A stretch of 64,000 bases of DNA from assembly GCA_002104945.1 (NCBI GenBank), contig MCFH01000047.1:62001-126000 (forward strand), written 5' to 3'. Positions 2,885 through 5,284 of the stretch are shown here, one piece after another (the stretch's first letter is position 1; every line of letters starts with the position of its first letter). Position numbers and translations under genes: made by a program. This DNA is from Piromyces finnis finn. Its lineage: Eukaryota; Fungi; Neocallimastigomycota. Under the pieces are notes generated by a model, which was given only the letters and a program-made list of their open reading frames with translations, had not been told where the DNA came from and did not search any database.

Positions 2885-3314
2885 AGTAATATTCATTAGT
2901 GATGATAATTTAATTATTAGTAATACAATATACAATATTATACAGTATAAAGCATTATAAATTATAAATATAATTTTAATATTATATGTTAAAAATAAAT
3001 AAATATATAATAATATACCCCAAATTAAATGATGAATTAATTATTTATTATGACATATTGTACTAATTATTTCTAATTTTTATTTAATGTTATATCTAAT
3101 ATCGTTTAAATAATAAAAAAAAAATAATTATGTGTTAATAGAATATTAATAATCAATAATATGTTTTGGTATAATTCTATTAAAGTCTATTATTATGAAA
3201 AATGAAATAAAATAAAAACATAATTTATAATGAAAATGTTTTTAAGAATAGGAAAAATATATATATTCAAAAACTGTTATATTTTAAAAAGTATTAGTTA
3301 AATTTAAATATAAA

Positions 3315-5284
3315 TTATAAATAAATTCTTCTTAAATCGCCCGGAGATGTGATGATTTGACATTGAGGACATAAACGCTTTGCTCCCAAAGTCTGTAACC
3401 AACATTTTTCACAAAAAACATGCCAACAATTAATAGAAGTAACAGGATTAACAAATGGTTCTAGACATATTAAACATTTACTTGATTCTGTATGTTGTTT
3501 TTCCTTTTATTTTATTATTTTTTTTTCATTAAGTATATAAATATATATATTAAATAATTAAATCATTATGGATGATAATTGGTAATAAAATTATTTAGTT
3601 TAATATGAATACAAAAAGAAAAATATATTTATATAAATACCATTTCTTTAATTTTAGCTCTTAACGCATCAATAATTAAATTTTTGTCATTTTTTTTCTC
3701 TTCAATTTCATCCTGTTTTTTAATAGTTTCTTGTTTGTTATTATTCTGTTCCTTATTCTCTTTCTGGCTATTTTTAATTAAATTTTTTGGTATTGGTATT
3801 CTAATTATTGAACTATAAATATTTAAAAGTAAAACTTAGCCATTAATATTTTTCCAAACTATATTATAATTAATGCATTATAATATTATACCTTTTCTTT
3901 TTTGGAGGAGTATTTTGATTTCTCTCAATGTTTTTCTCTTTTTCATTTTCATTTTCTTGTTTTACCTTTAAAATACTATGTTCTCCATATGTATAATGCA
4001 TAAAAATATATATTAAGATAAAAGAATGAAAATTAAAGATAACGAAAAAAAGTTTTATATTTCCTCACAACATATAGAAAGTAAAAAGGAGATATGTAAC
4101 ATAATAATCATCATATTCAAAAAAAAAAAAAAAAGGATATTGTTTCTGTCCATATATTTCGGTTTCATCATCCTCTATATTTAATTCAACATCAGTATCA
4201 TCATCTACTCTTGAATGATTAACTGGATTAGAAGCAATATCTAATTTCATAAATTTATATTAATAAGTTTTTGCTTTTTATTATAAATATTAGTTTATAA
4301 TTATACCTGATATACTCCCCTCATGTAATGAGGTTGCTCGTATTCTTGTTTGCCCTGCCCAAGTATATTCATCAAAACTTCCTGATTTCTGTAGATAATA
4401 TTATAAAAATGGTGAATGAGGTGAATCATACATATCTTTTTAAAAAAAAAAAAAATACAAAAAATACATTTAATAACACTGAAGGCTCTTCAACCATCAC
4501 ATTCTGTTGCTGTAAACATTGGTCTATATGTAAATTAATTTGTTCTAAGGAACCAATAAGTACAGCTCCACACATAAAACAAGTGGATGGGTTTATACTG
4601 TTATTATATTCATCTTTCGAATTTTTTAAAAAAGTTTGGTTAAATTTTAAAATTTGGTAAATTATAAAAAAAAAATAATATTTTTTTTTTACTTATTAAA
4701 TTATCTATTTCGTTTTTTTTATTTTTTCTTTTAGTTTTCTCTAATGATGACAAAATTATTATTAATAAAGCAATTAATATTTTTATGAAATTTTAAATTA
4801 AAAAAGAAAAATAAATATACATGTTATTATAATTATTTATTGACCTCTTAATATATTTGTTCTTGATATTCTATTGCTCTTTACTCGAGATAATAGCTTT
4901 ATAATTATTTATAATTGTTTAATTTAATAATGAAAAATAAATTATTAATGTAAAACAAAATAAAATTTTATTGAAATATTATATATAATATTATCAATAT
5001 TAAATATATTTATATATATATCGGTATAATGTTATTATACATACTCTTTCATTATCGTCTTCTAGAAAATCTTTCTTGGAAGAAAATTTTTTCATAGCAA
5101 CCATAGCTGCTCTCCTATTCATCTTTCGATTTTCGACTATCCAATCTGATTTACTTTCAATTTTATTGGAATTAGCATTATTCCAGTGGTGAGTAAAATG
5201 TAATTTTATTGTAGATTTGGATATATGGTCACCACATATAGGACAGTTTAATAAACTCGAATTTGATTCACTTTTTCTTGTCAT
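3315..5284 (-). CDS. RNF220: RNF220-like RING-finger E3 ubiquitin ligase, multi-exon, contains one AT-AC intron
   Basis: C-terminal RING CLICLEPFVNPVTSINCWHVFCEKCWLQTLGAKRLCPQCQIITSPGDLRRIYL*. Internal EYTWAGQTRIRATSL and DVELNIEDDETEIYGQKQY, plus two N-terminal CxxC..H zinc motifs, match recalled RNF220 motifs. Confidence 0.88.
3991..4140 (-). other. U12-type (minor spliceosome) AT-AC intron, 150 nt
   Basis: Minus strand: 5' end ATATCCTTT, branch-like TATCTTAAT (4012-4020), 3' end TATAC. Removal restores the frame GQKQ|YGEHSIL through to the RING exon. Confidence 0.85.

Follow-up and report, generated by a model that had tools for sequence, protein, structure and literature searches.

An RNA-supported U12-type AT-AC intron, probably as old as the fungus-animal ancestor, in an RNF220-family gene of the anaerobic gut fungus Piromyces finnis

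Piromyces finnis is known to have minor introns and minor snRNAs (Larue & Roy 2023, PMC10639083), and the human and mouse genes RNF220/Rnf220 are recorded as carrying a minor intron (Olthof et al. 2019 supplements, PMC6717393). The mammalian listing gives the 5' splice site as ACA|GTATCCTTG, the branch site as TTGTCCTTGACC, and the intron length as 200 nt in human and 177 nt in mouse, where the intron listed is that of ENSMUST00000030439 at chr4:117277830-117278006 (PMC6717393). Minor splicing in the gut-fungus lineage and the RNF220 minor intron of mammals are both, in this sense, already published. The minor introns that Larue & Roy 2023 describe in Neocallimastigomycetes come from the same group of organisms and belong to the same class as the intron considered here, but the text of that paper singles out no RNF220 gene (PMC10639083), and a link between RNF220 and minor introns was not found in the full text of any paper in our literature searches. 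We describe an interval (4140..3991, minus strand) of the window, by which we mean the whole 64,000-nt stretch of P. finnis DNA that was analysed, with a G+C content of 19%. The interval is very probably an ancestral, constitutively spliced, U12-dependent AT-AC intron in the RNF220 orthologue of this anaerobic gut fungus. Minor splicing has been recognised in this fungal lineage only recently, and the interval provides it with a U12-type intron backed by RNA. The minor intron of mammalian RNF220 would date back to the common ancestor of fungi and animals or earlier, with switching from AT-AC to GT-AG and repeated losses since.

The gene lies on the minus strand and comprises nine exons encoding 375 aa, with a reading frame that is open through the RING exon and a 3' UTR that reaches at least position 3200. 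Exons were searched singly, and the nine-exon join was used locally for the frame check alone. The features, in the order of transcription, are as follows:

5045..5284, minus strand: exon 1, with the ATG at 5284 (transcript contigs and frame check)
4845..4896, minus strand: exon 2 (transcript contigs and frame check)
4693..4740, minus strand: exon 3 (joints 4613/4693 and 4740/4845 in contigs; frame check)
4468..4613, minus strand: exon 4, RNF220 domain, with a zinc-finger-like CxxC...HxxxC (contigs; PF15926 profile positions 109-135)
4307..4388, minus strand: exon 5, core of the RNF220 domain (contigs; PF15926 at 29.1 bits against a cut-off of 26)
4141..4240, minus strand: exon 6, ending in ...EIYGQK plus the CA of a split Q codon (contigs, frame and PF15926)
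3991..4140, minus strand: U12-type AT-AC intron, intron 6 of 8, 150 nt, phase 2 (skipped in transcript contigs of four runs; boundary and slide test)
4132..4140, minus strand: 5' splice site ATATCCTTT, a U12 consensus, followed by a T-run (sequence)
4012..4020, minus strand: branch-site-like motif TATCTTAAT, the sole CTTAA[CT] of the intron's 3' part
3991..3992, minus strand: the intron's 3' terminal AC, the first AC past the branch motif (transcript contigs and sequence)
3892..3990, minus strand: exon 7, starting A|TAT GGA (..Q YGEHSIL) (transcript contigs and frame check)
3641..3812, minus strand: exon 8 (transcript contigs and frame check)
3315..3503, minus strand: coding part of exon 9 including the stop, with a C3HC4 RING and the C-terminus ...CPQCQIITSPGDLRRIYL (contigs, frame and domain match)

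The matches to PF15926 in exons 4, 5 and 6 are colinear (profile positions 109-135, 155-178 and 186-210), with exon 5 alone passing the cut-off, and exon 9 matches zf-C3HC4_2 at 4.5e-15. The gene therefore has the arrangement by which the family is recognised, in which PF15926 precedes a C-terminal C3HC4 RING that ends ..GDLRRIYL, and on this domain order its predicted product is an RNF220-family RING ubiquitin ligase. A search with exon 9 gave 790 relatives, the best of which included RNF220-named proteins of corals, arthropods, echinoderms, hemichordates and fish, together with unnamed ones from early-diverging fungi, from Diphylleia and from an amoebozoan; no public protein of P. finnis or a close relative was among the best 150 representatives listed. 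RNF220-family transcripts were seen in Diphylleia rotans (P0047) and in the amoebozoan Clastostelium (P0010), indicating that the family is older than the opisthokonts. Since gene predictors easily mis-model introns that are not GT-AG, the public annotation can be checked against the exon map above.

The RNA data consisted of assembled transcript contigs from four public runs in three studies, a form of data in which rare retained or alternative forms are hidden. About 30-40% of the gene's sampled words were present in each of the four runs, as expected for spliced RNA. The contigs align to the gene as nine blocks, and seven of the gaps have the plus-strand ends CT..AC, equivalent to GT..AG on the strand of the gene; by contigs and sequence together, the remaining seven introns are all GT-AG. 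At the intron itself, every contig record consists of a piece at 4240-4145, exactly four unaligned letters, and a piece at 3990-3892. The aligner had masked 4107-4144 (a T-run repeat), and the four letters, which are not displayed, were assigned to 4144-4141 from the coordinates of the records, so that exactly 150 nt are missing from the transcript. Depth in the interior of the intron (bin 4014-4087) was zero in the assembled contigs of all four runs. The spliced junction 4141|3990 is predicted to spell ...GACAGAAACA|ATATGGAGAA.

The intron begins ATATCCTTTTTT and ends ...TATCTTAATATATATTTTTATGCATTATAC. Its removal gives GGA CAG AAA CA|A TAT GGA GAA, that is GQKQ|YGEHSIL, interrupted in phase 2 within a Gln codon, while its retention would introduce an in-frame stop after about 28 codons, ahead of the RING; removal would therefore be needed for an active ligase. 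The four nucleotides ATAT are shared by the two ends of the interval, and sliding the junction over them gives AT..AC, TA..CA, AT..AT, TC..TA and CC..AT, none of which is GT-AG and of which only AT-AC is a known boundary pair. The window contains the motif ATATCCTT 6 times, no more often than expected (6.8), and the significance of the motif here comes therefore from its position at an RNA-supported junction and not from its count; at an RNA-proven junction that is not GT-AG, this 5' motif is decisive for the U12 type. Towards the other end, TATCTTAAT ends 21 nt ahead of the 3' end of the intron, and the branch nucleotide would be A4013 or A4014, with 22 nt from A4013 to the 3' junction. The TCTTAAT within it starts at -28 and differs at two of eight positions from TCCTTAAC. 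A TCTTAA[CT] has a chance of about 1.2% of falling within any 30-nt stretch of the window, and it occurs in none of the seven GT-AG introns of the gene, one of which has ACTTAAT at -31. When the U12 box, the 5' end of U11 and U6atac were each paired with the intron in RNAduplex, the energies did not set it clearly apart from the GT-AG introns, the sequence being AT-rich. A crude filter for other U12 candidates in the window returned the RNF220 intron alone. The first-pass annotation, made from the letters of the window, had proposed a U12-type AT-AC intron at 3991-4140 with a branch-like motif about 21 nt from its end, had seen no need for a GT-AG solution, and had predicted that excision would join GQKQ to YGEHSIL in frame with the RING exon; each of these points was borne out, the frame running open to 375 aa and the junction 4141/3990, which it had named as the place to look in RNA, being the one at which contigs of all four runs skip exactly 150 nt.

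We compared the same site in other species. The RNF220 homologue of Syncephalis fuscata (Zoopagomycota; KAI9598950.1) is interrupted at the same codon, likewise in phase 2, by a U12-type intron of the AT-AC subtype, and a U12-type intron of the GT-AG subtype occupies the site in a millipede; both are annotated introns:

Syncephalis fuscata, L012:2627-2707: AT-AC U12-type intron, 81 nt, phase 2, ATATCCTTTTAT...TACTTAAC plus 20 nt ending AC, splitting the Q before Y in YGAQ(Q)YTEEDV
Millipede Chamberlinius hualienensis, L039:6035-6128: GT-AG U12-type intron, 94 nt, phase 2, GTATCCTTTCGA...TTCCTTAAT plus 14 nt ending AG, at the same codon GCT CA|...|A TAT GGT

The Syncephalis intron shares with that of P. 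finnis the codon and phase, the 5' site ATATCCTTTT and the terminal AC, and its branch motif likewise lies about 21 nt ahead of the 3' site, but the intron belongs to another phylum, is shorter (81 vs 150 nt) and has the branch motif TACTTAAC in place of TATCTTAAT. The millipede intron likewise shares codon and phase, with an exon end ..CA| and a next exon starting |ATATGG, whereas it is of the GT-AG subtype and has a near-perfect branch motif, TTCCTTAAT, whose spacing, about 15 nt, is canonical. The mammalian intron lies in the same gene family, is short and has a U12-type 5' site; its exon end ACA| fits (CC)A CA|, the P-Q of GKPQ|YTEAD, and thus a phase-2 split of Q at what, by the published listing, is probably the same codon. 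It differs from the P. finnis intron in being of the GT-AG subtype (GTATCCTTG), in its stronger branch site, TCCTTGAC, and in its length (177 and 200 nt vs 150 nt).

No intron was present at the site, which reads inside one exon, in the chytrid Zopfochytrium, Podila, Coemansia (where the gene is intronless), the starfish Patiria miniata and the hemichordate Glandiceps talaboti. The coral locus (L015), which covers the first 295 aa only, was left out of the comparison. Closer to P. finnis, a 2.8-kb metatranscriptome contig (L018, Ga0138317_1008783) holds the full spliced orthologue mRNA of a related anaerobic gut fungus, with 94% identity to the P. finnis gene in the RING exon and about 70-90% elsewhere; its nine exons are contiguous, and it reads an unbroken EIYGQKQYGEQSIL across the junction. 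Among the metagenome loci L019-L037, no [AG]TATCCTT was found upstream of the RING, and YGxxQY was unbroken where the motif was visible. The suggestion of the first-pass annotation that the intron might occupy an ancient opisthokont position is thus upheld by Syncephalis (AT-AC) and the millipede (GT-AG U12-type), in both of which an intron splits this Q codon in phase 2.

The neighbouring GT-AG intron 5 (4241-4306, phase 1, after ..LHEGSIS) apparently lies at the same place in Syncephalis, Zopfochytrium, starfish, hemichordate and millipede (L012, L011, L016, L017 and L039); its site appears to be common to these species and, if so, a shared major-type intron stands beside the minor one. The public model of Podila minutissima seemingly skips 29 nt between aa 355 and 356 (L013:2789-2817), which is too short for a normal intron and may therefore be an annotation patch.

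We searched the genome (56,455,805 bases in 232 contigs) for the minor-spliceosome machinery, with Rfam gathering scores as thresholds. U12 was found at 66.6 bits (gathering score 53) with its GAGUAAGGA box intact, and U6atac at 52.1 bits (gathering score 33). The U11 candidate, with a conserved stem-loop III and Sm site, scored 38.2 bits, just under its gathering score of 39, and the U4atac candidate scored 49.2 bits, under its gathering score of 53; the 5' part of the latter with the U6atac of the same genome gave -35.2 kcal/mol, against -22.6 +/- 3.8 for shuffles. The claim that this lineage splices U12 introns, for which the first-pass annotation had pointed to the minor snRNAs, is supported by these scores, two above the gathering scores and two just under. 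Among proteins, an exon-by-exon search gave no match to PF16021 (PDCD7/59K), which is uninformative for PDCD7, and one match to PF05253, the U11-48K zinc finger (27.9 bits), a domain that is not exclusive to U11-48K.

The U6atac gene (L002:1501-1649; G000:C112:211500-211648) reads GCCGA where most species have AAGGA, the box that pairs with the 5' site, and is thus a CC variant, which pairs poorly with ATATCCTT. It was the one U6atac gene found, a genome search for a second with an AAGGA box having given chance-level matches alone. Such CC variants have been described from cnidarians, Acanthamoeba, Physarum, moss and oomycetes, fungi not being among those reported, and were already hard to reconcile with 5'-site pairing in 2008 (Davila Lopez et al. 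2008, PMC2396436). The 5' end of the U11 candidate (L003:1501-1615; G000:C152:317514-317628) reads AAAGAAAAGUUU and could pair with the C and U-run that follow ATATCC in many P. finnis introns. The human U11 5' end is AAAAAGGGCU. About 550 nt from the U11 candidate lies a SNORD14-like snoRNA (L003:2162-2325; 52 bits, below the cut-off of 64).

By the known pathway of minor splicing, U11 would recognise the 5' site ATATCCTTT and the intact GUAAGGA box of U12 would pair with the branch motif TCTTAAT, after which the U4atac/U6atac.U5 tri-snRNP would join; the 3' site would then be the first AC to follow the branch site, at a distance of 22 nt. The intron would have been inherited from at least the common ancestor of fungi and animals, kept as AT-AC in two fungal phyla and as the GT-AG subtype in the millipede (and probably in mammals too), and lost in several other lineages. 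Because terminal dinucleotides alone do not define the type of spliceosome, the same ends could in principle belong to the rare class of U2-type AT-AC introns, on which the major spliceosome acts, and both the imperfect branch motif, 22 nt from the 3' end, and the poor pairing of the CC-variant U6atac with the 5' site would agree with this. We regard it as very unlikely, given a 5' site that is the full U12 consensus, unlike the GT-AG 5' sites of the same gene, the strong U12 5' sites and branch motifs of the orthologous introns in Syncephalis and the millipede, and the four minor snRNAs in the genome, even with the U11 and U4atac candidates just under their thresholds.

Nor is it at all credible that the missing 150 nt are an artefact of template switching by reverse transcriptase, or of assembly collapse, between the flanking 4-nt ATAT repeats. 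There is a 4-nt microhomology at the junction, and the evidence does consist of assembled contigs; however, the same junction is seen at full contig depth in four runs of three studies with no retained form in the contigs, the open frame requires the removal, the related gut-fungus mRNA (L018) has the same protein junction, and two distant species have annotated introns at the same codon. The ATAT repeat itself is made up of the U12 5' site and the conserved Tyr codon that follows the intron. A further reading accepts the intron as minor but holds it to be regulated, that is, detained, with slow splicing limiting the level of RNF220 protein; animal minor introns are often slowly spliced, and retention here would truncate the protein ahead of the RING. 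We think this unlikely for P. finnis, where contigs leave the interior uncovered in every run (contigs cannot measure retention), and cell-cycle-linked regulation of minor splicing was not found in the fungus studied by Larue & Roy 2023 (PMC10639083). Constitutive removal of the AT-AC intron by the minor spliceosome accordingly remains the reading that we adopt.

The distance between the branch site and the 3' site bears on how the minor spliceosome of this species may choose its 3' sites. In U12-type introns this spacing is 10-15 nt by textbook accounts, with a mammalian optimum of about 11-13 nt. A genome scan for ATATCCTT with TCCTTRAY downstream, limited to matches with open frames on both sides, yielded 11 further candidate AT-AC introns (L050, L054, L055, L061, L062, L064, L065, L066, L069, L082 and L084) with a perfect TCCTTAAY. 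With 3' sites set by the open frames alone, distances from the branch A to the junction were 11, 11, 11, 12, 13 and 13 nt in some candidates and 20, 23, 24, 27 and 37 nt in the others, so that 5/11 have a spacing of 20-37 nt. Given this range of 11-37 nt, the 22 nt of the RNF220 intron are ordinary for the P. finnis genome, though long by mammalian standards. In the RNF220 intron and in each long-spacing candidate that was read through, no other AC comes between the branch motif and the one that serves as the 3' site. We tentatively suggest, as a possibility that we hold to be on the doubtful side, that the minor spliceosome of the AT-rich P. finnis follows a relaxed spacing rule, using the first AC even when it lies 20-37 nt past the branch site, alongside a CC-variant U6atac and a U11 5' end reading AAAGAAAAG. 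If this is true, the choice of minor 3' sites would have changed in a lineage-specific way, of which the RNF220 intron would be one instance. Among the scanned loci there is also a near-identical multi-copy sequence, ATATCCTTGAGTTCCTTCTTCAACTCCTTGAAATC..., at about 27 places on many contigs (e.g. L060, L067, L068 and L070-L074), probably the antisense reading of a repeated gene or of a mobile element.
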